Sequence record: PV764603.1
Reading direction: 5' to 3' (one strand)
Length of the DNA stretch: 64,000 nucleotides
Shown here: positions 18,315-54,046 of the stretch, one piece after another
Numbering within the stretch: position 1 is the first letter of the stretch
Layout: every line of letters starts with the position of its first letter
Notes under the pieces: model-generated
Told to the model about the DNA's origin: nothing
Database searches by the model: none
The model's input: only the letters and a program-made list of their open reading frames with translations
Program-made: the position numbers and the translations under genes

Positions 18315-18323
18315 TATTTACAG
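18315..18323 (-). promoter_or_regulatory. CTGTAAATA promoter-like motif
   Basis: upstream of the leader of the H1-like gene. Confidence 0.6.
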
Positions 18324-18620: not shown

Positions 18621-18629
18621 TATTTACAG
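18621..18629 (-). promoter_or_regulatory. CTGTAAATA promoter-like motif
   Basis: 26 nt upstream of the ACP start. Confidence 0.6.
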
Positions 18630-19652: not shown

Positions 19653-19687
19653 GTGTGATCCTTCATTGGTCGGAGTGTTCCGGGAAA

Positions 19688-19836
19688 TTTGCCAAGTGTG
19701 CTTGGCGAATCTGGCGTAGCGTGCAGGCACAGGGCATGACTCTACACCACTATCATACACCACCCCTAGCCGGGTGTCAAACCACCCCTGTCAGCCGTTC
19801 AGGTTCCGTTCAGGTTCGATTTGGGCACACTTGGCA
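19688..19836 (-). promoter_or_regulatory. promoter module copy 1: TTGACA-17-TATGAT with upstream CAGGGGTGG and tandem CTGAACG boxes
   Basis: -35 at 19775-19780, -10 at 19752-19757, CTGAACG at 19796-19802 and 19807-19813. Confidence 0.85.
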
Positions 19837-19843
19837 GAATCTC

Positions 19844-22006: not shown

Positions 22007-23895
22007 GGAATCCCCAGCAGGCGTTTTCTGGCGGTCACGTCGTCGGCCATCAGCAACGTAAACCGGGAGAGCGACTTTGCATCCTTGAGCGTGATGCGCT
22101 TGAGCTTACGGGTGGTGGCATCGAACGCTGCCTCCCGCAGCATTTCCGGAGCCGCCTCACCCCACCCCTTGAGGTGGTTGACCTTGTTGCGGTCTGCGCC
22201 CTTCGGCATCTTGGCCCACAGTTCCTTACGCGACTTCGCCATGTAATAGGTCTTGGTCTTGGCGTCGTAGTAAGTGTACTCCGGACTGTCCACTGTGTAG
22301 ATCAGACCACGCTCAAACACACCCGGCACGTACTTGACCAGCAGGGCAATCACAAGCGTTTCGATGTGGCGACCGTCAACGTCCGCGTCGGTCAGCATAA
22401 TCATCTTGCCGGTACGCAGATGGTCAAGCGGATTCTTCTTGGTCGGATCGAAGCCCAGCGCACGTAGGATGAACAACACTTCGTCACTGTTGAAGGCCGC
22501 GTTAATGTCCTTCTGCTTCATGACATTCAGAATCTTGCCGCGCAACGGCAGGATTTCCTGATGCGTCTTATCGCGGGCCTTCTTCGCCGTACCGCCTGCC
22601 GAGTCACCTTCCACCAAGAACGTCTCACGCTTATGCGGAGCGCAGTTGGCGCTGACGAACTTGGCAGGCATGTTGTTGCCCTTCTTCTTGCCCGAGTTCA
22701 GCGCAGCGATGGCCTTCTTTGAGGCAGTGAACTCCGCCTTAGCTCCACGCACAGCCGCTGCCTTCTCGCACAGCGTCTTGGCCAGAGTCTTGTTTTGTGC
22801 GAAGAACTCATCTAGCTTCTTCTGCAACGGCGTGGGCAGCATGTCGTTGACCCGGCCGTCAACCAGCTGTGCCTTGTCCTGACTGCTGAATCGGGGAGCA
22901 TCGAGCTTGGCGTTGATGATGCCTACTGCACCTTCGAGCACGTCGTCCTTTCGGAAGGACTGCTTGCTGTTGGCGTACTTGACGATGGCATTGTAGAGAG
23001 ACTGTTTCAGAATGTCTACATGCAGACCACCATTCTTGTTGTGGATCGAGTTGGTGTATGCCTCGATGTTGTCGCCTTCGGCATCTGTGAACGCCAGCGC
23101 AATCTCAGCAGGGAACCCCTTCTCGGTCAGGACGAACGGCTTGCCAGTGACAGTAGCCTTGAGCTTCTTGCACTGCGCACCGAGGAAGTCCTTGACACCA
23201 TCCTTGAACTTCCACTGCTTCTTCTTGCCATCAACGATGAGCGTGACTTCCAGCCCGGCGTTGAGGTAAGCAGCAAGTTCACACCACTGCTCGAAGTAGT
23301 CGATCGGAATCTTCGAGCCCTTGTCGAAATACTTGAGGTCCGGAATCCAGTGGATCGCCGTGCCCTTCTTGACCTTGACCCCGAACGGCAACTTGGGGGC
23401 AGTCGCCTTCTTGACCGGCTTCTTCTCCACGCCATCGGCGTACTGAGTATGCCACCACACCTTGTCTCGGAAGGTGTGAACCTCAAAGTGCTTCGACAGC
23501 GCATTGGTAGCCTTGAGGCCAACGCCGTGCGTACCACCCGCGTTCTCGTAAGCACCCTTGTCAAACTTTGCGCCTGCATGCAGACGACTGACCAGCGACT
23601 TGAGTGCCGACTCCTTGACCTTGCGGCCTTCGATTTCCAGCGTGTGAGGCTTGACTGGCATACCACCTGCCGAGTCAATGGTCCAGAATTTCCACGCCTT
23701 CGTGTCGATCAACAGGGTGACAGAAGCGCCACGGCCTGCCTTGAATTCGTCAACGATGTTGTCCAGCGGCTCGCGGCCGATGGTGCCGATACCCGTTGAA
23801 TCTGTAAGGCCGATATACATACCGGCTTTGGCCTGAACGGCTTTCAAGCCAATCAGGACTTTTACTTGCTTCTCTGAATAGCTGGCTTTCGCCAC
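22003..23895 (-). CDS. type IIA topoisomerase subunit B (GyrB/ParE-like)
   Basis: EPLDNIVDE, GTHGVG GHKL motifs; VEGDSAGG, PLRGKILN, TDADVDG Toprim; GTG start after GAGGA. Confidence 0.95.
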   Translation of the reverse strand: MAKASYSEKQVKVLIGLKAVQAKAGMYIGLTDSTGIGTIGREPLDNIVDEFKAGRGASVTLLIDTKAWKFWTIDSAGGMPVKPHTLEIEGRKVKESALKSLVSRLHAGAKFDKGAYENAGGTHGVGLKATNALSKHFEVHTFRDKVWWHTQYADGVEKKPVKKATAPKLPFGVKVKKGTAIHWIPDLKYFDKGSKIPIDYFEQWCELAAYLNAGLEVTLIVDGKKKQWKFKDGVKDFLGAQCKKLKATVTGKPFVLTEKGFPAEIALAFTDAEGDNIEAYTNSIHNKNGGLHVDILKQSLYNAIVKYANSKQSFRKDDVLEGAVGIINAKLDAPRFSSQDKAQLVDGRVNDMLPTPLQKKLDEFFAQNKTLAKTLCEKAAAVRGAKAEFTASKKAIAALNSGKKKGNNMPAKFVSANCAPHKRETFLVEGDSAGGTAKKARDKTHQEILPLRGKILNVMKQKDINAAFNSDEVLFILRALGFDPTKKNPLDHLRTGKMIMLTDADVDGRHIETLVIALLVKYVPGVFERGLIYTVDSPEYTYYDAKTKTYYMAKSRKELWAKMPKGADRNKVNHLKGWGEAAPEMLREAAFDATTRKLKRITLKDAKSLSRFTLLMADDVTARKRLLGIP

Positions 23896-23927
23896 GTCGG
23901 TTCCTCTTGGTTGAACGTCATACCCTA

Positions 23928-23936
23928 TATTTACAG
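23928..23936 (-). promoter_or_regulatory. CTGTAAATA promoter-like motif
   Basis: 33 nt upstream of the topoisomerase B start. Confidence 0.6.
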
Positions 23937-24685: not shown

Positions 24686-24877
24686 TTATCGTAGTTGTGC
24701 AGTGTGCTCAATGCGTTCACGCAGCTTGTCGGTGTCGAACGTCTGCTCCATCAGCAGCTTGTTGACCCACAGCTGGTACTCTGTTCGGCCGTCTACGTCA
24801 CGCTTCTTGATGACGTAGCTCTTGCCGTTGTGCGGCGCCACCTGTTCGGTGACAATCTCCCATGTTACTCCTGCCAT
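24686..24877 (-). CDS. hypothetical protein (63 aa)
   Basis: short ORF overlapping the E1 stop. Confidence 0.55.
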   Translation of the reverse strand: MAGVTWEIVTEQVAPHNGKSYVIKKRDVDGRTEYQLWVNKLLMEQTFDTDKLRERIEHTAQLR

Positions 24878-25548
24878 GTTACGCTGTGCATTCCCCATTC
24901 TTCACCCACGCTTGTCACCACCGTGTTAGGTGTCGGGCGGCCCATGACGAAATTCATGAACTGCCAGATCATCTGTGACGCGACAATCTGCGCCGTAGCT
25001 CCGACACTGAGGGTTGCCCCACAAGCCGCGCGCTCTACATTGGCGTCGTCGTCATCGAACAGGCCACCAATGTAATTAGTGCGTTGCCATTCCTTGCTGC
25101 GATCAAGCAGGAACGAGATTGCATCCCGGGCTCCCATGCGTCCATCCAGAAACGCACCACCCTCACACGGCAAGTAGTTCTCCGCGAAGGCACGGCGCGA
25201 TGCCATGTTGTCCACGCATACGAACACATATGGAGTGGCCTCAAACCTGGGCTTATTGAGGCGGCGAGGACACGCGCCCACTCGCGTGTCCGAAACTTGA
25301 CGCAGGCGATCCACCAAGGCAACAGCCTTGTTCGTCCCCACGTCATCGGGACCGTACAGGCATTGGTTCGGCAGGTTGTGGGATTCCACCACGTCATCAT
25401 CATAGACAACGAACGGTACACCGATCTTTGACAACTGCAACGCTACCGCGCTGCCCAAGGCCCCTGCCCCGACAACCACCGCAGGCGTGCGCTCAGTGGC
25501 CTTACTCTTGCTCAGGTCGAAGATACCGGTCAATCGAATTTGATCCAT
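24865..25548 (-). CDS. E1-like / ThiF-family adenylyltransferase
   Basis: GAGALG, DDDVVESHNLPNQ, NKA, VCVDN, DGRMG, and a candidate catalytic Cys in ERAACG; no Zn CxxC pairs. Confidence 0.92.
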   Translation of the reverse strand: MDQIRLTGIFDLSKSKATERTPAVVVGAGALGSAVALQLSKIGVPFVVYDDDVVESHNLPNQCLYGPDDVGTNKAVALVDRLRQVSDTRVGACPRRLNKPRFEATPYVFVCVDNMASRRAFAENYLPCEGGAFLDGRMGARDAISFLLDRSKEWQRTNYIGGLFDDDDANVERAACGATLSVGATAQIVASQMIWQFMNFVMGRPTPNTVVTSVGEEWGMHSVTWQE

Positions 25549-30835: not shown

Positions 30836-30844
30836 TATTTACAG
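30836..30844 (-). promoter_or_regulatory. CTGTAAATA promoter-like motif
   Basis: 40 nt upstream of the start at 30796. Confidence 0.6.
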
Positions 30845-40018: not shown

Positions 40019-40027
40019 TATTTACAG
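40019..40027 (-). promoter_or_regulatory. CTGTAAATA promoter-like motif
   Basis: 15 nt upstream of ATG 40004. Confidence 0.55.
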
Positions 40028-42032: not shown

Positions 42033-42472
42033 CAGTCCAGCAGGTTGTTGAAAGCGTCGTCGATCAGTTCATCGAGGTTGTCACCGACAACGCAGTAGCC
42101 GCCTTCACTTGCATCGAGGGTCGCGCTTTCGTAGTCCACATTGGCGCACACCATCCATGCGCCCTTGAAGACCGTGTTGCGCTTGGGGTCGCGCGGACCG
42201 ATGTAGTAGCCTTCCTTCTGGAGGGCATGGGCGCGTGCGAAGCGCTCCGAAGTCTGCTCAGTGTTCTTGCTCATGTTCGTTTCCTTGGGCACGTGGCCCG
42301 GGTAAGGGTTTTCTTTGGTCAGAATCCACTCGGGATTCTCTGCGACTTTGGCAAGTGCCTCTGGCACAGAGGCACCGAATGTGGTGATGATGCGGCGTGG
42401 CCACTCTTTGACATTCACCAAAATGAGGTGATCGTATCCCGAAGACCACTCGATTCCTACTTCAATGGTCAT
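42032..42472 (-). CDS. hypothetical protein
   Basis: start ATG 42472 overlapping the upstream stop. Confidence 0.6.
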   Translation of the reverse strand: MTIEVGIEWSSGYDHLILVNVKEWPRRIITTFGASVPEALAKVAENPEWILTKENPYPGHVPKETNMSKNTEQTSERFARAHALQKEGYYIGPRDPKRNTVFKGAWMVCANVDYESATLDASEGGYCVVGDNLDELIDDAFNNLLD

Positions 42473-42750
42473 TTGGTCGCCGCCCATTCCAGCTTGAACT
42501 CGGCCATCGCTTGGCGCAAGGCCGTGTCGATGTGTTCGTCGTTGAGGTAATCGTACACCGGCCACCCCGTCTGCATGCCTGCGCTGTCACCCGCTCGGAG
42601 CTGGGTAGCCCATAGCGCGTCCCATCGGAAACGCATCGGCGTCAGGCCATTGTTTTGATAGAGAGCTTCGGACAGCTTGAGCTTGGGGAGGATGGTAGTC
42701 AGCGCATCGCGCAGCTGAGTGTAATGTTCCGGCTTCATCTTCATCATCAA
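42469..42750 (-). CDS. hypothetical protein (93 aa)
   Basis: MKPEHY...RFRWD...YDYLNDEHIDTALR. Confidence 0.7.
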   Translation of the reverse strand: MMMKMKPEHYTQLRDALTTILPKLKLSEALYQNNGLTPMRFRWDALWATQLRAGDSAGMQTGWPVYDYLNDEHIDTALRQAMAEFKLEWAATK

Positions 42751-42917
42751 TCTCCGTCATCACAGGTGCAGGTGGACCACACGTAGCAGTAGCCGCAGGG
42801 GCGCAGGTCCGGATTCTCAACCCACTCACCAGCAGGCCGAGGATTCTCGCTGTCAGCGAGCGCGGCGCATCGCTCGCAGCCACACAGTTCACTGTGCAGC
42901 ACGTATTCCTTAGCCAT
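42747..42917 (-). CDS. small Cys-rich protein
   Basis: CGCERC...CGYC...CTC. Confidence 0.5.
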   Translation of the reverse strand: MAKEYVLHSELCGCERCAALADSENPRPAGEWVENPDLRPCGYCYVWSTCTCDDGD

Positions 42918-43131
42918 TGTCCTCGGCCTCCGTCGGCTCAGGCAGCTTGTCCCACTCCTTCGTTCCTGGGTTCCACTCGTAGCCAAGCGGCTGGCCCGGA
43001 TAGTGGATCATGTAGAAGTCGAGCGCCCGCACCGCACCTGCTCCGTAACCTGCGTTGGTGAAGGCGTCTTCAATCGTTTCACCCTCGACCAGTTCATGCG
43101 TGCCCGAACGCCAATACAGAACGTAGTTCAT
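42910..43131 (-). CDS. hypothetical protein (73 aa)
   Basis: AAGGAAAG RBS. Confidence 0.65.
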   Translation of the reverse strand: MNYVLYWRSGTHELVEGETIEDAFTNAGYGAGAVRALDFYMIHYPGQPLGYEWNPGTKEWDKLPEPTEAEDNG

Positions 43132-43141
43132 GTTTCTTTCC

Positions 43142-43959: not shown

Positions 43960-43997
43960 AACGAAAAGGGGCCACCAAGATCGCTCCCGGCAGCCCC
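43960..43997 (-). terminator. intrinsic terminator ending the modification cluster
   Basis: GGGGCTGCCGGGA-GCGA-TCTTGGTGGCCCC-TTTTC. Confidence 0.8.
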
Positions 43998-44002
43998 TAA
44001 AT

Positions 44003-44851
44003 TCAGCCTAGTTTGAAGTCGATGCCCACAGCCACCTTGCTAGTGACCGGGTGCACGCCACGTAGGACTGAGGAAATCTGCCGTTCAAACAACGGGGCTT
44101 CCCAATCCAAGTACGTAGTGGTATCGCCATGACGGACGATTATTTCCGCATCCTCTATCAGGGGCGCACCTATCAACTCTGTTACGCCTGCTGCATTCGG
44201 ATTGTACATTGCGGCTACTTCGATCACATCATCGAACCCTAGCACTTGAACTTCACCACCCCAATTTACTGGAGTGGTTGCAGCATGATCTACCTTTGCA
44301 GCCACGTCGAAGCCACGCTGCCATCCGATGATGCTCATCAGGTGGAAGCCTAGGTCGTACTTGATTACGTGGTTCCACGGAGAACCATCGGTAGGCATGT
44401 TGTTGTGGTACATAGCCAGCGCCGTGATGGGGTCGTGCACGCCTGCCAGCTTGGAATGGTAAATCCATTCGGCGGAAACAAGCACACGATCATCAATCAC
44501 GTCTGACTTATACGGCTTCTCACACAGCACGCGAGACTCAGGGAAGCATTGTACCGCTTGCCTCACTAACAGGTCATGAGTGCTATCTGGCGTGGCGATG
44601 ATAATGAGGTCCGGAGCATTCCACGTACTCATCATTGCGCCAGTCAGTGTTTTGTATACTGGAACCTGACGCTCCAGCACAGCTTCTTCATAGAACGAAC
44701 CCCATTGATTAACCAGCACCGATCTGCTGTAGACTTCACTAGCCTTGGGGTCCACGTCTACGACAAAGGACAGCGTATGTCCGAGATTCAAGGCAGCGAT
44801 GGCGTGAGCTTTACCCACGCCAAGGCCCCCTACAATTCCAATGCGAGCCAT
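44003..44851 (-). CDS. Gfo/Idh/MocA-family oxidoreductase
   Basis: RIGIVGGLGVGKAH, IIATPDSTH, VLCEKP. Confidence 0.85.
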   Translation of the reverse strand: MARIGIVGGLGVGKAHAIAALNLGHTLSFVVDVDPKASEVYSRSVLVNQWGSFYEEAVLERQVPVYKTLTGAMMSTWNAPDLIIIATPDSTHDLLVRQAVQCFPESRVLCEKPYKSDVIDDRVLVSAEWIYHSKLAGVHDPITALAMYHNNMPTDGSPWNHVIKYDLGFHLMSIIGWQRGFDVAAKVDHAATTPVNWGGEVQVLGFDDVIEVAAMYNPNAAGVTELIGAPLIEDAEIIVRHGDTTTYLDWEAPLFERQISSVLRGVHPVTSKVAVGIDFKLG

Positions 44852-44854
44852 TGC

Positions 44855-45964
44855 TTAGTTCGGGTAGCGGTCGTTGTCGAGCAACTTAGTCAGGCGAGTG
44901 GTAATCGTGTGCTCAAATGCGTTGACCTGCACGAACACTGGGGCCCTCAACACGTCGAACAGAGTGTGGCGTACCCAATCCTTACTCAGGAGTTGGGCTG
45001 CATCTTCCAGCGTGTAGTACAGGTGCTCGTCGCGGTACATGTATGGGTAGCACGCGCGGTTGGGCACTACCGGAATCGCGCCTAGGACCACTGCATCAAT
45101 AACGCTGTAACCGAAAGTCTCCAGCGTTGCAGAGCTAAACAGGAAACTCAGTTTCGCCACCTCGGTCCAATACTTGTCCTTGGTATCACATAGGACGAAC
45201 TCAATACCTGCATCCACCGCTTCCTGATACAGCGGTGCGGTGTCGAGGGGAACCGGGTGCAGAACGCGGAAGGTGCGGGTGTCGCCAAGACGATGGGCCA
45301 GTTCGATGAAGTCTTCGGGGCGCTTATCCTCTGCCCAACGATGGCTCCAGCCCACGACAGGCTTTGCCTCTTCAGCACGCGCAGTCAGCGAACGGCGCAG
45401 CTGCGCAGGGTTGGTATCTTGTGGGCTAATGACCGGCAGGCCAATGACGTTGACGTTGGTGGAGTTTAGTAGGTCCACTCCATAATCGGTAGCTACGTAG
45501 GTTTCGGTGAAACAATCCAGCAGGGTTTCTTCGAGGCTGCGTACCCACGAGCCTGCCGAATACAGGAAGTCACCCGGAGTCTCAACGCTGCTATGGAAGA
45601 AGCCGGTCAGGTGGGCCTTGATGCCTGCGCAGTGCATGTGGAACTTGAGCACCGGAACGGCAGGCGACCAACCATCGGCAAAGTAAACCACGTCGCCATC
45701 AGCGATGTGATCCAGCACACCCAGCACACCCTTGCAGAACGATTTGGTCATCGTCTCGTCGGAATAGAACATGGACTGCGACGACATGCTGTTGAATTCT
45801 TCGCCGCTGTTCACCTCAACGACTTCAAACTCATGACCGTTGAGGGTCCGAGTCTTGTCTGCTGCGGTTTGGCGGAGGGCGGCGATCACCTTGTTAGTGA
45901 TCCACTTCTCAGGGCGGAAGTCCGACTCAGGACTGCGAACTACAATGATCTTCTTCACTTTCAA
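44855..45964 (-). CDS. GT-B glycosyltransferase, GTDC1/QTMAN-like
   Basis: WSHRWAEDKRPEDF and SATLETFGYSVIDAVVLGAIPVVPNRACYPYMY. Confidence 0.8.
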   Translation of the reverse strand: MKVKKIIVVRSPESDFRPEKWITNKVIAALRQTAADKTRTLNGHEFEVVEVNSGEEFNSMSSQSMFYSDETMTKSFCKGVLGVLDHIADGDVVYFADGWSPAVPVLKFHMHCAGIKAHLTGFFHSSVETPGDFLYSAGSWVRSLEETLLDCFTETYVATDYGVDLLNSTNVNVIGLPVISPQDTNPAQLRRSLTARAEEAKPVVGWSHRWAEDKRPEDFIELAHRLGDTRTFRVLHPVPLDTAPLYQEAVDAGIEFVLCDTKDKYWTEVAKLSFLFSSATLETFGYSVIDAVVLGAIPVVPNRACYPYMYRDEHLYYTLEDAAQLLSKDWVRHTLFDVLRAPVFVQVNAFEHTITTRLTKLLDNDRYPN

Positions 45965-46569
45965 TCCTCTTTGAACTTTCGGTGGTGGAGGCTGCGAGTT
46001 ACCTCAACATGAAGCGACGGTCCGCGCTCTCCCTTTTCATGCAACACGAACGACTCTGCAATCAGATCGAAGTTGCCGATCATATACATTTCGCGCTCGT
46101 AGATTTGCAGGCACTTGCTCTTGGCTTTGGTTTCGCTGTAGAGCGTGAAGTCCGGCACCTTGTAGTTGAATGCAGGCACCAGCACGGATGGGCGCTCCTT
46201 GACTGGCAGCATCGACCACGCGAGCATGGTGTGCTTGTGTAGTTCCCGATGATGGCGGTGGCCATACTCACCGTTCGGGTTGTGCGTTACGAGGTAGTTG
46301 TACCCATTGTGCAACTGCTGATAGATGTTCTCCACCAGCAGCGCAGTGTCCTCGGTCAGCGTGCCTTGGTAATCGTCGTCCAACGCAAGCTGGATACCCC
46401 TCGATTTCAACACCTTACAGGCGGCAAGGAATTCCTTGCCGCGTGCAGTGCGATGACCGTAAGTGGCACATAGATCGTGCCACTCGATATGAGGCGTGGC
46501 CTGCCGGATGTTGTGGCCGAAAATGAAACTGTCATCCGGGTGGGCCATTACAATCAGTGCTTTCATCAC
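45961..46569 (-). CDS. PIG-L/LmbE-family deacetylase
   Basis: VMAHPDD, VTHNPNGEYGHRHH. Confidence 0.8.
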   Translation of the reverse strand: MMKALIVMAHPDDSFIFGHNIRQATPHIEWHDLCATYGHRTARGKEFLAACKVLKSRGIQLALDDDYQGTLTEDTALLVENIYQQLHNGYNYLVTHNPNGEYGHRHHRELHKHTMLAWSMLPVKERPSVLVPAFNYKVPDFTLYSETKAKSKCLQIYEREMYMIGNFDLIAESFVLHEKGERGPSLHVEVTRSLHHRKFKED

Positions 46570-48089
46570 AGTCCTACTAGCGGCGCGTCCTGCATATACT
46601 TTACAGGATCGTCCTTACCAATCATGGCAAACGCGGTTCGCCTCAGCTGGCATGGCCCACAGTTTCCGCAATGAAGCTCACCGCCGTGGTAGCAACTCCA
46701 GCTAAGGTGAATTGGCGCTTCCAGCATCAGACCCGTCTGTGCCACCTCATGCTTCATCAGCTTGTCCAGAGGGTTGACCAACTTCGGAGCGGCCTTGGAG
46801 CCAATGGCGATTGCCTTCTCCATCAGGTCGAAGAATTCCTTTTCATTGTCCCCGAAAGCACCTGCTTCTTCAAGATTGGCGCCGGTGTAGATTGCACCGA
46901 AGCTCCACCGATCAGCATACGCTGCCATCATGGCGACCATCAGGCCATTACGGAACGGCACCCATTCATTCGCGTACTCGATGCCGTCCTTGCCGGTTGC
47001 CACTTCCATCGTGTCGTCCACCAGCGGGTTGCCACCCAGCTGCTTGAGGAAGTCGAGGTCGAAGAACTTGAGGGTGATCGTCTTCCGAGGATGACGCTCA
47101 ACCAGTGCAGCATGAATAGCCGTCACTGCCTCCGTCTCGCGCGTCTGTGCCCGGCAACCATAATGGAAGTGAGCGAGCACGATGTTGGTGTGATCCCGGC
47201 ATGCGATTTCTGCACTAACCGTGCTGTCCATACCACCGGACAGGATCACGATGGCGCTCTCAGGGTTGCCGCCGTTCGGGTCCTTGTCGAAGCGAGTGGT
47301 TGCCGCCTTGCCTACGAAGAAAGAGTTCCGGTCGATGTGGCCGTTGAACTTCCAAGTCGAGTTGGCGGCGATTGGGTAATCGGTATACATGCCGTCACGA
47401 AACAGTGCACGCGTAATGGCCTGCCGCTCACTGGCGAATACTACCGCAGCGCCGTTTTCATGGAAGCCAAAGCTAGGGCACACAGCGGAGAGGGGCCGAT
47501 AGTTGCGGGCGAGCCACAGCGTATCAGTCTCCACGTCGTAGACCGCTGACGCAACAGAACCGATCAGGCTTTCAAACTCACCACGCTCAATCGCGTAGGG
47601 AATCGCAGCGCTATCCACCTTGGTGCGGGAATGTTCCGGGATGAATTGCGCATCGTTGGCGATGACGCCGTTATGCACAGCGAAATAGCGTTCAGAGGGC
47701 CAGTTGGCGTAGGGCTGAATGTCATCCTCGCGCTGGTCCTGTAGCCATTCAGTAGTCGGCTCGGCTCGGCAGTTTGCGATCAGGGTGAAACTTCTCACCT
47801 CGTTCGGAGTCATGGCGTCGAGGTTGCGCATCATGATCTGCACCTGACTGATTACAGCCAGTGCACGTGCATTGAGGTCAGGATGAGTATCCCGAATCGA
47901 ACGGAAAGACTGACGCTGGAACACGCGATGCGTGGTGCCATCAAGCGACGTGATGAAGGCAGCGTAGCCCATTGCATCACGGCCACGCTCGCAACTTTCA
48001 ACAGCCAGCGTCATCAGTGCGTTGAAGACGACGCGCTTCTGCTGTGCGTCAGACCAACGCAGGTTATGGACACCGAAAATGGAACACAT
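46566..48089 (-). CDS. queC: class II glutamine amidotransferase-QueC fusion (GAT-QueC)
   Basis: N-terminal MCSIFG, ERGRD, NCRAEP, HNGVI, DS; then ILSGGMDST, VPFRN, SWSCY...HCGNCGPCQLR. Confidence 0.92.
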   Translation of the reverse strand: MCSIFGVHNLRWSDAQQKRVVFNALMTLAVESCERGRDAMGYAAFITSLDGTTHRVFQRQSFRSIRDTHPDLNARALAVISQVQIMMRNLDAMTPNEVRSFTLIANCRAEPTTEWLQDQREDDIQPYANWPSERYFAVHNGVIANDAQFIPEHSRTKVDSAAIPYAIERGEFESLIGSVASAVYDVETDTLWLARNYRPLSAVCPSFGFHENGAAVVFASERQAITRALFRDGMYTDYPIAANSTWKFNGHIDRNSFFVGKAATTRFDKDPNGGNPESAIVILSGGMDSTVSAEIACRDHTNIVLAHFHYGCRAQTRETEAVTAIHAALVERHPRKTITLKFFDLDFLKQLGGNPLVDDTMEVATGKDGIEYANEWVPFRNGLMVAMMAAYADRWSFGAIYTGANLEEAGAFGDNEKEFFDLMEKAIAIGSKAAPKLVNPLDKLMKHEVAQTGLMLEAPIHLSWSCYHGGELHCGNCGPCQLRRTAFAMIGKDDPVKYMQDAPLVGL

Positions 48090-48094
48090 GTGGG

Positions 48095-48889
48095 TTACTC
48101 CGTGGGGTCGAGCAAGACCGGAACCTTGCGCTCAAAAGGAATGGGCTTCCACGTCTTCTTGTAGTCGAAGACGGCGAGGCCGAGGTTGAGATACAGCACG
48201 TTCGCCTTGTAGCACAGGCGCAGGGCTTGCAGGAGCATTACGTTCCCGATGGTGTACTCCTTGGCGTATTGGTCACGCAGGAGCAACGTGTTGACCCAGT
48301 GATACTCATCGTTCTCTGGGCACATTTGGAACATGCCAATGCCGCATGGGGTGAACTTGCCATCCTCGCTAGGACGGAAAACCAGCACCACGTCACTGTT
48401 GGGAATCAGCGACCATGCAGCGATGTACTCAAGGTATGCCACCGCCGTTTCTGTCGCACCTTCAAACGTCATGCCCGGATTGAAGTGTTGCAGGTTCGAG
48501 ACGATGATGTGGATGAGTCCAGCCTTGAACTGGTCAAACTCTCCACCACGCGCGGGATGGAACATGAGGTGGGCCGTGTTCTTCCAGCTGCGCTTCAACT
48601 GCGACAGCGATTGCAGGTGCGCCTCAAAGCTGGGACGGCTTGCAATAACACGAACCTCTGGACGCATCGTGTGCGCCAGATTGTCCGACAAGTTCAGAAC
48701 CTCATCGTAGAAGGCAGGGAACTCAGTGTCGCCCATAGGAACAAGGATGGCCCCTGCGTCCTCGGTATGGACCTCCTCAACGGTAAAGCCATTCGGTGCA
48801 GCGACCGGCTTGAAGGGTAGGCCCTTATTGCGCGCCAGAACCTCGCGGTATACACGGTACTTCTCGAAGGCTGCGCGAACGTTACTCAT
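48095..48889 (-). CDS. GNAT-fold transferase (Acetyltransf_6/Fem-like)
   Basis: SFEAHLQSLS...; IGNVMLLQAL...YLNLGLAVFDYKKTW. Confidence 0.65.
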   Translation of the reverse strand: MSNVRAAFEKYRVYREVLARNKGLPFKPVAAPNGFTVEEVHTEDAGAILVPMGDTEFPAFYDEVLNLSDNLAHTMRPEVRVIASRPSFEAHLQSLSQLKRSWKNTAHLMFHPARGGEFDQFKAGLIHIIVSNLQHFNPGMTFEGATETAVAYLEYIAAWSLIPNSDVVLVFRPSEDGKFTPCGIGMFQMCPENDEYHWVNTLLLRDQYAKEYTIGNVMLLQALRLCYKANVLYLNLGLAVFDYKKTWKPIPFERKVPVLLDPTE

Positions 48890-49925
48890 AAACCCATGCT
48901 CCTGCTTGGTAGTAGGGAGGCCACATTTTCTCTTTGGGGGTGGCCGAACAGATTGCGATACCTGCATACGTCATCGTGTCATTACACACGGGACGCTTGT
49001 ACTGACTGTAGGTGTGCCCTTCCACAAAGTCAGCAGCCAATGTGGTATCAATGATGGCGGTCCCCGTCTCCGGCCGCTGTAGGTAATACTGCACAGCATG
49101 CGCCAGCACCGCAGTACCCAACCCATTCGGAGCATCGTAGGTCGAGTCCTTGAAGAAGCCAACGAAGACGCGACGATTGACGCGCTTCACGAACGTACCG
49201 ACTGCCACAAGGCGCAAGCCATCGTAAACCTTGATGGTATCGCACCCTGAACCAGCAGCCACCGACATTGCCAGCGGTAACAGCGAACCTTCCACTACCA
49301 GCGGATGCCACGTCGAGCACGTCTCCGCTGTCTGCGCACTCCAATGTTCCTGCATCCACTCGGCGATGACTGGAATCTCATAGTCGAACAAGGGCTCGAC
49401 CTCAAACGTGAGGTGCTCGGATACGCGCAGCTTCTGCCGTACTTGTGCCCTACGCTTAGTGGACAGGGACGTGAGATATTCATCCCACGTCATGACTCCG
49501 GCGCGATCACGATACCCGAGATACACCACGTCTGACTTGAGCGAGTAGATTTCCCGGGGGAAGTCTTCGCCGTATCTATGTGGGCAGTCAAGGGCAGGAG
49601 GTGCGACAACTGCATTATCCTGCTCAAAGGTTGGGATGGATTGAGACAGGTCGATCAAGGTGTTCTTGATTTGATCGACCGTACCTAACATGAAGCCGGT
49701 TGCCATCCCCATGTTGGTGAACCCTGCGTACAGGGTTCCGTCCGGGTAAGACTCAACAGCGATTGAGCCGTCCGTGCTCACGTACAGCGGCTTGTCCGCA
49801 TAGGAAGGTGCAAGCTTTCTGCGGAGCTTTACCCACTGTGCTTGCACGTCCTTATCTAGCTCAGGGTAGATCGAATTTGAACATCCGAAACGTTCAATGT
49901 AATGCTCGGCAGTCATTACGTGCAT
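48882..49925 (-). CDS. GNAT-fold transferase (Acetyltransf_6/Fem-like)
   Basis: TWDEYLTSLSTKRRAQVRQK; GLGTAVLAHAV; YSQYKR. Confidence 0.7.
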   Translation of the reverse strand: MHVMTAEHYIERFGCSNSIYPELDKDVQAQWVKLRRKLAPSYADKPLYVSTDGSIAVESYPDGTLYAGFTNMGMATGFMLGTVDQIKNTLIDLSQSIPTFEQDNAVVAPPALDCPHRYGEDFPREIYSLKSDVVYLGYRDRAGVMTWDEYLTSLSTKRRAQVRQKLRVSEHLTFEVEPLFDYEIPVIAEWMQEHWSAQTAETCSTWHPLVVEGSLLPLAMSVAAGSGCDTIKVYDGLRLVAVGTFVKRVNRRVFVGFFKDSTYDAPNGLGTAVLAHAVQYYLQRPETGTAIIDTTLAADFVEGHTYSQYKRPVCNDTMTYAGIAICSATPKEKMWPPYYQAGAWVYE

Positions 49926-49927
49926 GG

Positions 49928-50803
49928 TTATTCCTTTGCGGTGTTATTTAGCAGTGCATGGCGCAGCTTGAGAATACTTTCGGGGTGAGTCAGGTCGCGG
50001 TCAGTACGCGCATGGAACAGGGAGCCTCTGAACGTGCTGTAGCTGACGCCGTATTCCACTGCCGTAACCTGTGCGCCCTTGACGTAAGACACCACCGCAG
50101 TGTGGAAGGTACGCGAGAAGTAGTCTCGGATGTTCCACATTTGCTTATAGGTGTCATCCCACACAGAGTAATGCTGGTCCGGTAGCAGATTACTCAGGTC
50201 TTCCGGCACGATACCAGCAGCGCCGTCGAGGATCAGCAGATACCACTTGTCACGAATACCGAGTTGGGTCAGGAGGTTCTGAGTCAACTCGATGATTTCA
50301 GGATTATTTGGAACAACCAGCACGTGCGGTCGCGTGGGAGCGTACAGTTCCCTAGCAGCTTCGATACCGATGACCTTGGCACGACGCTCTGCCATCACAG
50401 GGTTAGACACGAAATCGTGCTCGGGCTCGGCGAACTCGTAGCCCCTGCGCGACTGCGGGATGGGCGTTTCCGAATCCAGCAGACGCAGCACGATGGAGGT
50501 TTCAGGGCGGATGGCACACATGGCTTCCAACACAACTTCGGTCATGTTGCGGCCGTAGTCTGCTGCCTGCCATGCAGGACCAACAATCTCATCGCCTTGC
50601 AGTTCGACCGTGGTGCTGCCGATAGCGAAGCGCAGGTAGGTCAGCAGTGGAGCCCACGAACTCGGCACACCTTGCAGCGTGTAGTTGCCGTCCAGCGATG
50701 CCAGATAGGACAGCGCGTTGACCAGTTCAGGCAGGCTCTTGGAATTCGGACTCAGTTGCGAGGATGCGTCGTTCTCAGTTTGGGAATGAATCTCAATCTT
50801 CAT
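49928..50803 (-). CDS. hypothetical protein (291 aa) within the modification cluster
   Basis: coupled ORF; family not recognised. Confidence 0.7.
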   Translation of the reverse strand: MKIEIHSQTENDASSQLSPNSKSLPELVNALSYLASLDGNYTLQGVPSSWAPLLTYLRFAIGSTTVELQGDEIVGPAWQAADYGRNMTEVVLEAMCAIRPETSIVLRLLDSETPIPQSRRGYEFAEPEHDFVSNPVMAERRAKVIGIEAARELYAPTRPHVLVVPNNPEIIELTQNLLTQLGIRDKWYLLILDGAAGIVPEDLSNLLPDQHYSVWDDTYKQMWNIRDYFSRTFHTAVVSYVKGAQVTAVEYGVSYSTFRGSLFHARTDRDLTHPESILKLRHALLNNTAKE

Positions 50804-52430
50804 GCTTCAACCTCTTGTAGTAGTAGAATGCGTCCGTGCTATCAAGGTCATTACCAAACGAATCTGTCTTGTCATCGTAGTAGCCTACGACAGGCAGGCT
50901 CTGCTCAAACCCGAGGGCACGATACAGGCGCTTGGCAGGGTCGTTGGTAACCGAAGTGTGCAGGGCAACGCCGTCAAATTCATTCGACAGCAGCGCGAAC
51001 GCCTTTTGCATCATCTGCCTACCGACACCGTGGCCACGCATCTGCTCAGTGACGTACACAAGGTCGATATAGGCGTTCGGATTAAATTGGTTGAAAACAA
51101 TGTAGCCGATGGGGTTCCGATACCGCCACCTTGCGACAAGAATCCGAACACTTCCGCCCTCACGTGCCGTCATCAGGATGTGCGACAGCTGATTGATCGT
51201 CTCAAGATCGAAGGTGTTGAGGTCGTCTTCCCCGAACAGTTCAGAAGTCAGCTTGAGGAACTCAGCCAGCTTGATCTCCGACACGTCGATCTGATCGTTC
51301 CACTTGCTGTCCAGCTTCTTCAACTCCCATCCCTTACCACGGATGTATACCGGAGGTTCAAAGCCGTACTCAGCGCAGTAGTTGCCTGCGCAGAAATCCG
51401 AATCCACCACAGCGTAGTCGAGGGGAACGATGGGCAGTTCAAAGCCTACCGGAATGAACTTTTCCTTGTAGGTACCTTCGGTGTCTAGGTGGTAATACTT
51501 TACGTCGAGCGGCAGTTCTTCCGCAATGAATCGGATCGCCTCGTAGATGGCGAGGAAGCCGATGCGACGCTTCTTGTACTCTTCGTAGCTCACACCCGGC
51601 ACGGCCAGCTTGTCCACGTACACAGCGCCACGCACTTCACCGATGTTGGTGCAGATGAGGCGGTTGTCCGCGTCGTAGATATTGAGGACCAACGCATTAC
51701 GGTCCTCAAGGTTATGCAGCATGTTGTTGATGTGGATGATGTTGGTGACGTTATCATCCGAGGTGTAGGTCCACCGCTCAAGGTTGGCGGTGTAGTTCTT
51801 GTGGAAGTCAGCAGACTTCATCACGTCGCGCAGGCTAACCTGCTCCACCCGAACGCCTTCGTTCAGGCGCATCACAGCACGATAGTTCTCCCGGTTCTTC
51901 TTCGACAGGGAGGCAACGTAGCTTTCCATCGATTCGGGGATGTAGAGGCCATAGGACTTGTCATCCTGATAGCCATACTCACGCGGGTAGATCGGGAAGT
52001 AGTTGACGATCATGCAGGGCGGCAGCTGCTCAAACACGTCATCCAGAAATTCTGGCAGCGCCGGTGGGACGCTGACTTCAAAGTAGCTCGCACCAAACAG
52101 GTCAAACTTGGCTTGCTTGAGGGGATCACGGGTGTTCCACAGATCGTGCAGGATCGTATGGCCTACCATCTGCCCGGTGTTCAGGTCATACACATTCGTA
52201 ATCACCAGCACGCTTTGATGCACAAAGTTTGCCAGCAGTACCGAAATGTATTCGTCGTAGGTGGGCAGCAAGTCACCAAAGATGCCCACACCATCAAGTG
52301 CTTTGACCCGATGCAGGTACTGCTCAAACTTTGCCTTCGGGATGAGCTTCACAACGTCAGCGGTGGGTGCGACAACATGCTGCTCGCCGAACACCCGATC
52401 AGTGCGAAACTCGCGCAGTCCGTAATTCAT
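50793..52430 (-). CDS. double-GNAT protein (Acetyltransf_6-like plus C-terminal RimI-like domain)
   Basis: SMESYVASLSKKNRENYR; C-terminal VYVTEQMRGHGVG and NDPAKRLYRALGF. Confidence 0.8.
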   Translation of the reverse strand: MNYGLREFRTDRVFGEQHVVAPTADVVKLIPKAKFEQYLHRVKALDGVGIFGDLLPTYDEYISVLLANFVHQSVLVITNVYDLNTGQMVGHTILHDLWNTRDPLKQAKFDLFGASYFEVSVPPALPEFLDDVFEQLPPCMIVNYFPIYPREYGYQDDKSYGLYIPESMESYVASLSKKNRENYRAVMRLNEGVRVEQVSLRDVMKSADFHKNYTANLERWTYTSDDNVTNIIHINNMLHNLEDRNALVLNIYDADNRLICTNIGEVRGAVYVDKLAVPGVSYEEYKKRRIGFLAIYEAIRFIAEELPLDVKYYHLDTEGTYKEKFIPVGFELPIVPLDYAVVDSDFCAGNYCAEYGFEPPVYIRGKGWELKKLDSKWNDQIDVSEIKLAEFLKLTSELFGEDDLNTFDLETINQLSHILMTAREGGSVRILVARWRYRNPIGYIVFNQFNPNAYIDLVYVTEQMRGHGVGRQMMQKAFALLSNEFDGVALHTSVTNDPAKRLYRALGFEQSLPVVGYYDDKTDSFGNDLDSTDAFYYYKRLKHED

Positions 52431-53260
52431 TTCTTCGTTCTCAGGTAACGTGCATGGTTGAATACTTGCGTGGCGTCAAGGGCCTGAATGCCATCAAACA
52501 AAGGGAGGTTGAACCCAGAGGCATTCGCAGCGGCGTCCTTCTTGATGCGCTCAACCCAATCGCGGAAGTGCAGGCCATCCATATCCATAGCGCCAAGGGC
52601 ACCGAGGTGTGGGGCAAACGTTTCCATATCGACAAGGCGCTTACCAGCCTGACCGGCCCACAAGTCCAGCGCAACCATTGCAGCCTTGGATGCATTCGGG
52701 GTCAGGGAGAACATGCTGTCTACGCTAATGTAAGTGGGGAAGTTTAGGCCGAACAGGCCACCTACGATTTCGCCTTCTGCGTTGAGCACTGTGACCGAGT
52801 ACGCTTTACGTTCTTTACCATAGTGGAGTGCCTTGTATGCACGCTGGGTAGGAGTGTCGAGCCATTGCGTGTATTCGTCTGCATCTTCTTCCTTGTCTTC
52901 CGGGCGCTCAATCGTAGCGCAGTGGTGGATCACCTTGTCGAAGCCGACGTTCAGTTGGTAGCCCCAACCCTGCTTGCGAATGAACTGCTCGGTAGTCTTG
53001 GAAACGTGCAGGCCACCAACAGGCAGCACGGCGCGGCGACCGCTGACTTCCCAAATCCATTCGGGTTCGTCCTCCGTGCCAACGAACCCCATAGGGTGCG
53101 CCTGTGCCCTGTCGGCCAAACCGTACAGAAGGTGCGGCGTCATTTCTACTGTCCAGCAGTAGTCGTCATCATCCAGCGGGAAGTGCTCCGCATTGATGTG
53201 GCGAACGTCGTTCAAGTCGTACAGCTTGAACGGAATCTTAGTATCGCTCGAAGTGTCCAT
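52427..53260 (-). CDS. aat: leucyl/phenylalanyl-tRNA-protein transferase
   Basis: RRAVLP..LHVSKT, FDKVIHHCA, IVGGLFG, DSMFS...NASKAAM, HLGALGA. Confidence 0.85.
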   Translation of the reverse strand: MDTSSDTKIPFKLYDLNDVRHINAEHFPLDDDDYCWTVEMTPHLLYGLADRAQAHPMGFVGTEDEPEWIWEVSGRRAVLPVGGLHVSKTTEQFIRKQGWGYQLNVGFDKVIHHCATIERPEDKEEDADEYTQWLDTPTQRAYKALHYGKERKAYSVTVLNAEGEIVGGLFGLNFPTYISVDSMFSLTPNASKAAMVALDLWAGQAGKRLVDMETFAPHLGALGAMDMDGLHFRDWVERIKKDAAANASGFNLPLFDGIQALDATQVFNHARYLRTKK

Positions 53261-53960
53261 TCAGTTCATTTCCATAGAATTCAGTGAGGGTCATACCGAG
53301 GTGTGCAGTTTCGTCAACGGTGTCTGTTTCGATGGAAGCAGAGTCCCAAGGCGTGCGCTGAATGAAACTGTTCAGGTGCTTGCAGAGAGCATCGAATGCT
53401 TCCCGATTCGTGATGAACCGCTTGGCGTGGTCGTCACCTTCGCGCCCGGCGTTCTGAATGACCATGACAGGCTCGCCCTTGAACCACACGGAAGCCAGCC
53501 TCCAGAAGCGGCGCGGATCGAAGAAGAATTCCTTGATGACGCGCACTTCAATCTCGGTGTCTTTGTGAAGCGCCTCCATATCGAAGTCGCTGAGTTCTAC
53601 GTCTAGGCCACCCTTTAGATGGTTGAAGTAGAAGCCACGCAGAGCGTAAATGGCCGGCTCAACCTTATCGAAGTTTTCGATGGCGTAGATTTCCTCGCAG
53701 GTAAAGGGAACCTTGGCAGCCTCGGCCCTAGCCAGCTGATCTGCCTTGTACTCATTGATGGCGTCTACAAGTTGATTGACCTCACGGTCTCCCTGTGCAC
53801 CGCCGTCCACCTCCTCCATCTTGATTTCCACACCGATACTTTTCAGCATGGGCTCAATCTTTACGAGGGCCTGCATGTAGTGCATCGGTCCGAGGCCAGC
53901 CTCAATAGCTGCATAGACTAGGTGGGCAGGCTTGAACACAATCACAGTTTGTTCCGACAT
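53238..53960 (-). CDS. hypothetical protein (240 aa)
   Basis: AAGGAG RBS. Confidence 0.75.
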   Translation of the reverse strand: MSEQTVIVFKPAHLVYAAIEAGLGPMHYMQALVKIEPMLKSIGVEIKMEEVDGGAQGDREVNQLVDAINEYKADQLARAEAAKVPFTCEEIYAIENFDKVEPAIYALRGFYFNHLKGGLDVELSDFDMEALHKDTEIEVRVIKEFFFDPRRFWRLASVWFKGEPVMVIQNAGREGDDHAKRFITNREAFDALCKHLNSFIQRTPWDSASIETDTVDETAHLGMTLTEFYGNELNGHFERY

Positions 53961-53986
53961 TGGAATCTCCTTGAGGATACAGTCTA

Positions 53987-53995
53987 TATTTACAG
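53987..53995 (-). promoter_or_regulatory. CTGTAAATA promoter-like motif heading the 53.9-44 kb operon
   Basis: lies between the terminator at 54006 and the start at 53960. Confidence 0.6.
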
Positions 53996-54005
53996 GATCG
54001 GGAAA

Positions 54006-54038
54006 CGCAAAAGGGGCAGCCGTTAGGCCACCCCTTTC
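54006..54038 (-). terminator. intrinsic terminator
   Basis: AAGGGGTGGCC-TAAC-GGCTGCCCCTT-TTG. Confidence 0.8.
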
Positions 54039-54046
54039 GTGTGTTC

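Follow-up and report, generated by a model that had tools for sequence, protein, structure and literature searches.

The dG+ system of phage 9g and its Nonagvirus relatives consists of FolE, QueD, QueE, Gat-QueC and DpdA. Mycothiol and bacillithiol are made by another series of steps (MshA-MshB-MshC-MshD; BshA-BshB-BshC), in which a GT4 enzyme transfers GlcNAc, a PIG-L enzyme de-N-acetylates it, an amino acid is attached to the exposed amine by acylation, and N-acetylation follows. Sugars, amino acids and modified bases are also joined elsewhere: a glycosyltransferase of the huimycin pathway puts GlcNAc on a preQ0-derived base (PMC7439116), Orf11 acylates an amino sugar in an aminoacyl-tRNA-dependent way (PMC12945691), and BshA-like glycosyltransferases act on the bases of phage DNA (PMC13326640).

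A block of genes in Xanthomonas phage PhiXhv-16, a jumbo phage, may combine these chemistries. Its ten genes could constitute a pathway that tailors a 7-deazaguanine base for incorporation into the phage's own DNA, a reading to which we give about an even chance. No published description of such a modification was found in the literature. The window analysed here is the whole stretch of 64,000 nucleotides, which corresponds with 100% identity to record positions 62001-126000 of the 229 kb PhiXhv-16 genome (PV764603.1). It contains a real operon of ten genes on the minus strand (43,967-53,995), with the following features in window coordinates:

53987..53995, minus strand: promoter-like motif CTGTAAATA, 27 nt upstream of the g10 start
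53238..53960, minus strand: g10, 240 aa, first gene of the unit, matching phrog_8664 (2.5e-21)
52427..53260, minus strand: g1, 277 aa, divergent leucyl/phenylalanyl-tRNA-protein transferase homologue (Pfam Leu_Phe_trans, 7.8e-30)
50793..52430, minus strand: g2, 545 aa, two-domain transferase with an Acetyltransf_6-type N-domain and an acyl-CoA GNAT C-domain
49928..50803, minus strand: g3, 291 aa, degenerate ArcS2/DUF5591-family protein (profile search and family matches to PF17884)
48882..49925, minus strand: g4, 347 aa, occurring only in the PhiXhv phage group and lineage L006 (75% identity)
48095..48889, minus strand: g5, 264 aa, core gene, putative Acetyltransf_6-like GNAT-fold transferase (family-level PF13480 matches)
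46566..48089, minus strand: g6, 507 aa, core gene, Gat-QueC, a class II glutamine amidotransferase fused to QueC (QueC 2.3e-49; GATase_7 1.5e-8)
45961..46569, minus strand: g7, 202 aa, core gene, PIG-L/LmbE-family de-N-acetylase (PF02585, 3.5e-7, over the gathering score)
44855..45964, minus strand: g8, 369 aa, core gene, GT-B fold GT4-like glycosyltransferase (AlphaFold and Foldseek; start in the record, 45958)
44003..44851, minus strand: g9, 282 aa, core gene, short Gfo/Idh/MocA NAD(P)-dependent oxidoreductase (PF01408, GFO_IDH_MocA, 3.2e-9)
43967..43998, minus strand: intrinsic-terminator-like hairpin closing the unit, 5 nt past the last stop codon

Between g1 and g9, neighbouring genes overlap or are separated by 2-11 nt, and the g10-g1 junction measures 23 nt. 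The window contains seven copies of the motif CTGTAAATA, where 0.12 would be expected, every copy being gene-oriented with a start codon 25-45 nt downstream. The gene upstream of the unit ends in a hairpin and T-run located before the copy at 53987..53995, and the closing hairpin has a 14 bp stem (eight G-C pairs), a 4 nt loop and a T-rich tail. A sequence-only reading of this DNA had described a nine-gene operon; all nine open reading frames hold on the minus strand, but g10 precedes g1, with an ortholog in the equivalent position in L006, and g5 starts at 48889 instead of 48967. The g10 product matched nothing in Pfam or NCBIfam.

Domain assignments are firm for six genes, encoding the L/F-transferase, the Acetyltransf_6 plus GNAT protein, Gat-QueC, the PIG-L enzyme, the GT-B (GT4) enzyme and the Gfo/Idh/MocA oxidoreductase. 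They agree with the earlier calls for g1, g2, g6, g7, g8 and g9, through Pfam matches and, for g8, AlphaFold and Foldseek. By its signature residues (an MCS start with Cys2 as N-terminal residue, an SGGMDS loop and a C-terminal Cys cluster), g6 reads as a genuine Gat-QueC; it shares 32-33% identity with the Nonagvirus (9g-type) proteins over 99% of the length and also matches the QueC structures 2pg3 and 3bl5. The protein g3, previously left as unknown, appears to be a diverged ArcS2/DUF5591 member. A profile search with g3 collects 49 relatives; the proteins of about 300 aa retrieved by this profile number 47, with E-values reaching 1e-18. PF17884 is matched by 39 of 41 family sequences in the alignment, although g3 alone scores 0.056. 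In phage contigs, its relatives are located between FolE and QueC. The ArcS2 catalytic motif, PC-X3-KPY-X2-S-X2-H (PMC10516641), is absent from g3 and its L006 ortholog, which both read P-N-N-P-E..., without the Cys, Lys, Tyr and His; the family stretch YDSG is also missing from both, and AlphaFold gave no usable model of g3 (pLDDT 36). Together, g6 and g3 bear out the earlier proposal of a cluster centred on 7-deazaguanine chemistry.

The sugar-related genes point in a common direction. The g7 family profile matches MshB (8e-7) and no other PDB sequence, and every family member keeps AHPDDS and a His cluster. The AlphaFold model of g8 (pLDDT 87.3) has MshA and BshA as its best Foldseek PDB matches (E about 2e-10), with the glycosyltransferase of phage ACP17 among the best viral ones; PF00534 is found in 2 of the 12 homologues. 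Weak matches of g9 include inositol 2-dehydrogenase and glycoside 3-dehydrogenase, and its family keeps the glycine-rich loop and an EKP motif.

Among the transferase-type genes, only g1 appears to belong securely to a family that depends on aminoacyl-tRNA. It scores 104 bits against Pfam Leu_Phe_trans (cut-off 22.7) and matches the E. coli L/F-transferase structure 2z3k (3.9e-14), but its 80 bits against NCBIfam aat lie under the equivalog cut-off of 143.55, and the E. coli LIDCQ stretch reads LVDME, with the Asp retained and the Gln replaced by Glu. The N-domain of g2 matches PF13480 (8e-6, residues 178-305; 26.5 bits against a cut-off of 22). Its C-domain matches PF00583 (Acetyltransf_1, 1.7e-14, residues 427-508), contains an RGHGVG motif and is nearest to N-alpha-acetyltransferases (RimI, 3e-9; Naa30, 2e-7). 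The earlier call of two Acetyltransf_6/Fem-like GNATs, g4 and g5, survives for g5, weakly, as the assignment is carried by family members: four of five match PF13480 (best, 4e-4) and one matches ATE_C (2e-3), while g5 alone reaches 0.27 (11.8 bits). A PDB search with g5 and the g2 N-domain gave no Fem structure. The call finds no search support for g4, which is without match in Pfam, PHROG, NCBIfam and PDB and has only two homologues among 5.8 billion proteins; its resemblance to the start of the g2 Acetyltransf_6 region covers 32 residues only and is weak (hhalign probability 4.8%, 3 bits).

The partner genes that the sequence-only reading had named as worth looking for were located outside the window, at these positions of the record:

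223351-224031: FolE, GTP cyclohydrolase I (Pfam GTP_cyclohydroI, 9e-28; tblastn 8e-14 to FritzHoffmann FolE)
19635-20099: QueD-like PTPS (PTPS, 2e-16)
220000-220899: QueE, radical-SAM CDG synthase (2.4e-9 to FritzHoffmann QueE; 1.3e-14 to PAC2 QueE)
12971-14677: TGT-superfamily transglycosylase, 568 aa (DSGGFQ, CxCxxC...H; best PDB match, archaeosine TGT 1iq8, 2.5e-7)

With these four enzymes encoded outside the window, the 7-deazaguanine route appears to be complete, and an apparently complete tool kit within one genome favours the DNA-tailoring reading. QueE gave no Pfam match at 1e-3. Jumbo phages of Vibrio and Achromobacter encode homologues of the TGT-like protein that are annotated as TGT, and the Achromobacter one has been interpreted as a DNA transglycosylase (PMC7824862).

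The pathway can be laid out as follows. FolE, the QueD-like PTPS and QueE would make 7-carboxy-7-deazaguanine, which Gat-QueC (g6) would convert to a preQ0- or archaeosine-type base, and the TGT-superfamily enzyme would swap DNA guanine for this base. The MshA/BshA-like g8 would put an N-acetyl-hexosamine on the deazaguanine, most likely from a UDP-sugar, and the MshB-like g7 would take off the acetyl group, exposing a sugar amine that g5 may acylate or aminoacylate; g9 could oxidise or reduce a sugar position. In the PhiXhv lineage, the chain would be lengthened by the g2 N-domain, by g1 (probably aminoacyl-tRNA-dependent) and perhaps by g4, and capped by the N-alpha-acetyltransferase-like C-domain of g2. 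The degenerate g3 may bind deazaguanine rather than catalyse, and decoration could come before or after insertion of the base into DNA. From these domain resemblances, the decoration is most likely an amino sugar, through MshA/MshB-like transfer and deacetylation, bearing acyl or aminoacyl groups on the 7-deazaguanine. If true, G would carry a bulky sugar adduct, peptidic in part, that keeps restriction enzymes from cutting. This reading is favoured by the position of g8 and g7 nearest to the MshA/BshA and MshB pair, with which the sugar, deacetylation and acylation logic proposed earlier also fits, and by the chemical precedents of huimycin, Orf11 and the BshA-like DNA glycosyltransferases.

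Conservation favours the same reading. In at least six diverged phage-like lineages, the core genes Gat-QueC (g6), g5, PIG-L (g7), GT4 (g8) and Gfo (g9) lie side by side; L006 retains the whole block and at least five further lineages the five-gene core, so that the co-occurrence in relatives on which the earlier proposal depended is found. Homologues of g5 adjoin Gat-QueC in L006, L015, L016, L017 and L019, and GT4 and PIG-L genes are adjacent or almost so in L006, L015, L017, L019 and L020 (the L016 PIG-L match is weak, 2e-4). L016 also has a g2 homologue, and L015 an equivalent of the g2 N-domain. The L017 block additionally contains FolE and a TGT-like gene, which speaks for the DNA-tailoring reading, as does the presence there of a GARS_A ATP-grasp ligase, no aminoacyl-tRNA-type transferase having been found in that block. 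The GARS_A ATP-grasp family acylates amino-sugar amines. In all contexts, the core is surrounded by phage replication or nucleotide-metabolism modules, which further favours this reading. So does the g8 GT4 family adjoining a TGT-like gene, together with QueE/FolE/QueD genes, in PA5oct-like PAC2, ACP17 and BCSR5, considered with the G-specific restriction resistance reported for PA5oct DNA (PMC12191111). PA5oct itself carries the TGT-like and GT4 pair.

Several observations count against the DNA-tailoring reading. The paper describing PhiXhv-16 does not mention any modification of its DNA and reports no difficulty in making Illumina libraries. About 93 kb separate the operon from the TGT-like gene, g3 is without the catalytic motif of its family, and two of the ten genes, g4 and g10, are without a domain assignment. 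Secure membership of an aminoacyl-tRNA-dependent family is limited to g1, which falls below the equivalog score and has an altered LIDCQ stretch. None of the 7-deazaguanine derivatives known to us has a hydroxyl that a GT4 enzyme would obviously accept, which means that an N-glycosidic link would be needed. The PTPS motif is CxxxHGY, as in ACP17 and BCSR5, against CxxxHGH in QueD (PMC10516641).

The 93 kb distance, together with the absence of a TGT-like gene within 10 kb at four of the six core-bearing loci, would also suit the production, in the infected cell, of a free small molecule resembling huimycin: a 7-deazapurine amino-sugar glycoside with aminoacyl or acyl groups, acting as inhibitor, signal or decoy, with the TGT-like enzyme serving ordinary dG+/dPreQ0 modification or nothing related. 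Huimycin offers a model, being a preQ0-derived base N-glycosylated with GlcNAc whose glycosyltransferase gene stands beside FolE/QueD/QueE/QueC, and natural-product pathways are the best-known setting of GNAT-fold aminoacyl-tRNA transferases, amino-sugar acylation included. Nevertheless, this explanation seems rather unlikely: a TGT-like gene sits within the L017 block, three further phage lineages have TGT-like genes immediately beside a member of the GT4 family, no gene for export or self-resistance was seen in the block, and the phage Gat-QueC and ArcS2 proteins studied to date all serve DNA modification (PMC6884629, PMC10516641).

The base could instead be destined for host or phage tRNA, as a sugar- or aminoacyl-decorated queuosine/archaeosine-like residue tuning translation. 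Cellular tRNAs contain glycosylated and glutamylated queuosine, the TGT superfamily comprises chiefly tRNA enzymes (the best PDB match here being the archaeosine tRNA enzyme), and the only tRNA gene of PhiXhv-16, tRNA-Asn(GTT), belongs to the queuosine family. Such a target is very unlikely, however, as Pfam finds no PUA or other RNA-binding module in the phage TGT-like protein, related phage systems have so far turned out to be DNA systems, and the resistance of PA5oct, with its TGT-like and GT4 pair, is a property of DNA.

Little credence is given, likewise, to two unrelated functions that are merely co-transcribed, Gat-QueC (with g3) making plain dG+ as in 9g, and the GT4, PIG-L, Gfo and GNAT enzymes modifying a virion protein, a host surface glycan or a low-molecular-weight thiol-like metabolite. 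Small glycoside metabolites are the usual product of MshA/MshB-like pairs, the g2 C-domain is nearest to protein N-terminal acetyltransferases, and protein N-termini are the substrate of the g1 family; but the adjacency of Gat-QueC to g5, g7, g8 and g9 survives rearrangements and 38-51% protein identity across at least six lineages, and the GT4 family keeps company with QueE, FolE and TGT-like genes even where Gat-QueC is absent. Among the domain and homology matches, neither membrane, flippase nor structural genes were seen in the block. Virion or surface glycosylation, the alternative offered by the sequence-only reading, finds no support: these matches include no component for membrane or export functions within the block or beside it, and Gat-QueC accompanies the core in every case. 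Overall, the observations of that reading are partly confirmed and its interpretation is partly supported.

Compared with 9g/Nonagvirus dG+, PhiXhv-16 has the same base-building genes, with a PTPS that is QueD-like and a Gat-QueC that aligns end to end, and also a TGT-superfamily gene. Nevertheless, its long (568 aa) transglycosylase, of a TGT-like type, shows no detectable similarity to DpdA from FritzHoffmann, a relative of 9g, its deazaguanine genes are scattered over the genome, and 9g-type phages are without its GT4, PIG-L deacetylase, oxidoreductase and four or five transferases. Among the DpdA3-type phages (Campylobacter CP220, Cellulophaga phiST, Acidovorax ACP17), ACP17 has FolE, QueD and QueE genes together with a g8-type GT4 gene that adjoins a TGT-like gene, whose product matches the profile of the PhiXhv TGT-like family (3e-7), but the region as annotated is without QueC, PIG-L, Gfo and GNAT genes. 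Publications on these phages do not discuss the ACP17 GT4 (PMC6884629, PMC10516641).

Phage base glycosylation (T4 glucosyl-5hmC; arabinosyl or glucosyl 5-hydroxycytosine) also relies on GT-B/BshA-like enzymes from phage replication modules, but its acceptor is a pyrimidine hydroxyl, whereas the partner genes in PhiXhv-16 suggest a purine analogue, and the sugar proposed here would be further deacetylated and acylated. In the actinomycete huimycin and dapiramicin clusters, preQ0-pathway genes likewise stand beside a glycosyltransferase, which adds GlcNAc to the deazapurine 2-amino group; the products are free secondary metabolites, and the deacetylase, Gat-QueC and aminoacyl step are lacking. 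Orf11 (BD-12, streptothricin-type) and other FemABX-like enzymes have a GNAT fold and load an amino-sugar amine with an amino acid taken from aminoacyl-tRNA, the same step as that proposed for g5 and the g2 N-domain, and g1 may do likewise; g5 and the g2 N-domain match PF13480 and not the FemAB family, and their tRNA dependence is a candidate property.

The mycothiol and bacillithiol pathways run through the same kind of steps as the pathway proposed here. MshD has two GNAT-type domains, as does g2. No MshC/BshC-type cysteine ligase domain occurs in the unit or in the blocks of its relatives; GNAT-fold and L/F-type transferases stand where that ligase would, and the acceptor, inositol phosphate or malate in those pathways, is presumably deazaguanine in this phage context. 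By analogy, the unit resembles the MshA/BshA-MshB/BshB pathway in the way it would work, while not being a member of it.

The 9.3-kb region matches Xanthomonas phage PhiXhv-16 (PV764603.1, 229,154 bp) at 100% identity. This jumbo myophage represents a new genus, and the paper describing it makes no mention of base modification (PMC13340338). The region also shares 97-99% identity with PhiXhv-12, PhiXhv-15, Xanthomonas phage Ep026, and Erwinia phage Ep032. Window positions correspond to record positions minus 62,000. The nine minus-strand open reading frames (ORFs) lie where the sequence-only reading had placed them, with overlaps or gaps of 2-11 nt. A single operon running from motif to terminator is also retained, but it holds ten genes rather than nine, as a further ORF (g10) is found inside the unit. 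Since the search for promoters and terminators inside the unit gave none that was convincing (counts were lower than in shuffled sequence), and given the flanking motif and hairpin, the unit comprises ten genes, at 43,967-53,995. The relevant features, including the CTGTAAATA copies from the window scan, are the following (window coordinates):

53996-54040, minus strand: hairpin then T-run, immediately 5' of the promoter-like motif, absent from the automatic scan's list
53987-53995, minus strand: CTGTAAATA motif, start of the ten-gene unit
53238-53960, minus strand: g10, tenth ORF, directly 3' of the motif, with a 23-nt overlap with the L/F-transferase gene
43998-43967, minus strand: terminator-like hairpin, 14-bp stem and T-rich tail, 5 nt past the last stop
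40019-40027, minus strand: CTGTAAATA copy
30836-30844, minus strand: CTGTAAATA copy
23928-23936, minus strand: CTGTAAATA copy
18621-18629, minus strand: CTGTAAATA copy
18315-18323, minus strand: CTGTAAATA copy
7027-7035, plus strand: CTGTAAATA copy

The seven copies of this motif in the window (0.12 expected) always share the orientation of the local genes, 25-45 nt 5' of a ribosome-binding site and start codon, and the motif is probably a phage promoter element. The hairpin and T-run preceding the unit resemble a terminator for the gene before it. Elsewhere in the window, an acyl carrier protein gene (18326-18595) is flanked by two of the copies.

The GAT-QueC call for g6 agrees with its Pfam domains (GATase_7 plus QueC) and with 32-33% identity, over 99% of its length, to Gat-QueC of Nonagvirus and related phages; with its Met-Cys start, SGGMDS loop, and C-terminal cysteine cluster, g6 is, by its sequence, a true Gat-QueC. 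Pfam likewise confirms the PIG-L deacetylase (g7), whose family profile matches only MshB among all PDB sequences, and the Rossmann domain of the Gfo/Idh/MocA oxidoreductase (g9). The glycosyltransferase g8 has no match in Pfam, and its GT-B assignment is borne out by an AlphaFold model (12 homologues, pLDDT 87) with a GT-B fold, which in the PDB is best matched by MshA and BshA, two GT4 enzymes that use UDP-GlcNAc.

Leu_Phe_trans was recovered by Pfam for g1, which matches the E. coli L/F-transferase at 3.9e-14, with a score under the NCBIfam equivalog cut-off. The double-domain protein g2 consists of Acetyltransf_6 plus Acetyltransf_1, and its C-terminal domain is nearest to N-alpha-acetyltransferases (RimI, Naa30). 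For g5 (true start at 48889), a weak Acetyltransf_6 likeness comes from its family, with Acetyltransf_6 hit by four of five members and the arginyl-tRNA transferase C-domain by one; neither g5 nor g4 gave anything significant against g2 by hhalign or against the PDB by profile search. On these searches, the 'Fem-like' label for g4 was rejected as unproven, and no tool applied gave this protein a family match.

The 'unknown protein' of the sequence-only reading, g3, can be assigned after all. A word-indexed search returned only two relatives, versus 49 by exhaustive profile search, and 39 of 41 aligned sequences match PF17884/DUF5591, the archaeosine synthase core domain, named ArcS2 in phages (PMC10516641). 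In phage contigs, these relatives are located between FolE and QueC. By descent, g3 is thus placed in the ArcS2/DUF5591 family, but the family motif PC-X3-KPY-X2-S-X2-H is lost in g3 and its ortholog, and it is, therefore, probably not a standard archaeosine synthase. Its AlphaFold model, from a three-sequence alignment, is unusable (pLDDT 36).

Searches of IMG/VR and JGI metagenome contigs found no close relatives of Gat-QueC, g4, or g2, and related loci were reached instead via the protein clusters of g3 and g8. As the sequence-only reading expected, the genes co-occur in related phages. The whole block from g10 to g9 is present, in the same order, in L006, a contig of a diverged phage (protein identity 42%-83%), and the five-gene core g5-g9 is adjacent in further lineages found via g8 homologues (L015, L016, L017/L018, L019, and L020). 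Accessory genes differ by lineage: L016 carries a g2-like protein, and L015 an equivalent of the g2 N-domain. The L017 block also holds FolE, an ATP-grasp GARS_A ligase (L017 12646-13962), and a TGT-like gene; accessory transferases of the GNAT or L/F type were not found in its core block. More distant members of the g8 family (about 24% identity) adjoin a TGT-like gene and QueE/FolE/QueD in PA5oct-like PAC2, ACP17 (Acidovorax phage), and BCSR5 (Burkholderia phage), and adjoin FolE and QueE in Sinorhizobium phage Phosso. The GT4 of the PAC2, ACP17, and BCSR5 loci is undiscussed in the deazaguanine literature examined. PA5oct DNA is resistant at G-containing restriction sites and is the target of a modified-G-sensing nuclease (PMC12191111).

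The remainder of the deazaguanine pathway was sought in the PhiXhv-16 record outside 177000-179199 (structural region, about 2.2 kb). Both folE and queE are present. For queD, a PTPS/QueD-like protein was found, but with a modified motif. For dpdA, a tblastn search with the 9g-type DpdA of FritzHoffmann found no match, and 38 hypothetical proteins scanned for the Pfam TGT domain gave none at 0.01. Genuine phage DpdAs also lack a Pfam match, so this first negative result was misleading and carries no weight. A TGT-superfamily protein was picked up via its homologues in other large phages, which often adjoin g8-type GT4 genes. The loci of this protein, of the TGT-like/GT4 pairs, and of the QueD-like proteins are the following:

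record 12971-14677 (L002, PhiXhv-16), outside the window: TGT-superfamily protein, 568 aa, annotated 'hypothetical protein'
L008 6238-8921 (PAC2): TGT-like and GT4 genes
L010 7616-9915 (ACP17): TGT-like and GT4 genes
L011 8755-11220 (BCSR5): TGT-like and GT4 genes
L002 19635-20099 (PhiXhv-16): QueD-like PTPS, CxxxHGY for QueD's CxxxHGH
L010 5696-6172 (ACP17): QueD-like PTPS, same motif
L011 5063-5536 (BCSR5): QueD-like PTPS, same motif

The alignment of this TGT-like family contains DSGGFQ and the zinc motif CxCxxC...H, and a search with its profile hits archaeosine tRNA-guanine transglycosylase (2.5e-7). In jumbo phages of Vibrio and Achromobacter, homologues carry a TGT annotation, the Achromobacter one having been interpreted as a DNA transglycosylase (PMC7824862). 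No phosphoribosyltransferase for a nucleotide-level route, as annotated in the PA5oct-like locus, is annotated in PhiXhv-16. A 'thiamine biosynthesis protein' (window 24865-25548, minus strand), considered as a second QueC, was discarded, as it is ThiF-family E1-like (5e-21) and not a QueC/ThiI PP-loop protein.

Elsewhere, the genome encodes counter-defence-type proteins (record 23055-23912, 20629-21750, and 42349-43137), namely Tad3 (4e-27), a NADAR-domain protein, and an ADP-ribosyltransferase exoenzyme-like protein, and an Acb1-like protein is present among the scanned hypothetical proteins. The only tRNA of the phage is a tRNA-Asn with anticodon GTT (L004 19764-19839, record 146763-146838), one of the four queuosine-family tRNAs, which deserves mention beside a full deazaguanine pathway.

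Overall, PhiXhv-16 appears to encode a system for 7-deazaguanine modification whose tailoring branch is unprecedented. DNA is most likely the destination of the decorated base. The target may possibly be tRNA, in favor of which stands the identity of the sole phage tRNA, and the product may possibly be a free glycoside. Two functions may merely be co-located, but the recurring linkage of Gat-QueC, GT4, PIG-L, GNAT-fold, and oxidoreductase genes, like that of the GT4 family with the TGT-like transglycosylase, argues for one pathway acting on 7-deazaguanine. For DNA as the destination, our tentative and still rather doubtful proposal is a new hypermodification class, in which 7-deazaguanine would receive an amino sugar, whose amine would be extended with amino acids, at least partly in an aminoacyl-tRNA-dependent manner, and then N-acetylated; the donor sugar, attachment atom, and step order are those we infer. 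The five-gene core would then be a simpler version of this amino-sugar/amino-acid modification, distributed over several phage lineages. The ATP-grasp ligase of L017, from a family acylating an amino-sugar amine, supports the freed amine as the extension point.

In the searchable literature, no description was found of this gene module, or of a 7-deazaguanine in DNA that bears a sugar or an aminoacyl group. If true, the product would extend DNA chemistry: DNA would gain its first glycosylated purine-type base and, at the same time, its first modification built with charged tRNA, tying DNA modification to transfer from aminoacyl-tRNA. The pathway would add a new enzyme set (a GT4 paired with a TGT-like transglycosylase, a repurposed ArcS2, and a PIG-L whose substrate is a nucleobase glycoside) and offer a lead on the identity of the modified G of PA5oct-like phages. 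Such a base would be relevant to how these phages escape from, or trigger, modification-sensing defences, and might account for problems in sequencing or cloning their genomes.

The 7-deazaguanine derivatives known from phage DNA number eight, all small (PMC10516641). Each proposed chemical step has a precedent: GlcNAc is attached to a preQ0-derived base in huimycin (PMC7439116), an amino sugar is acylated in an aminoacyl-tRNA-dependent manner (PMC12945691), and phage DNA is glycosylated by BshA-like enzymes (PMC13326640). The enzyme logic proposed here matches that of mycothiol and bacillithiol synthesis, with GlcNAc transfer, de-N-acetylation, amino-acid addition, and N-acetylation.
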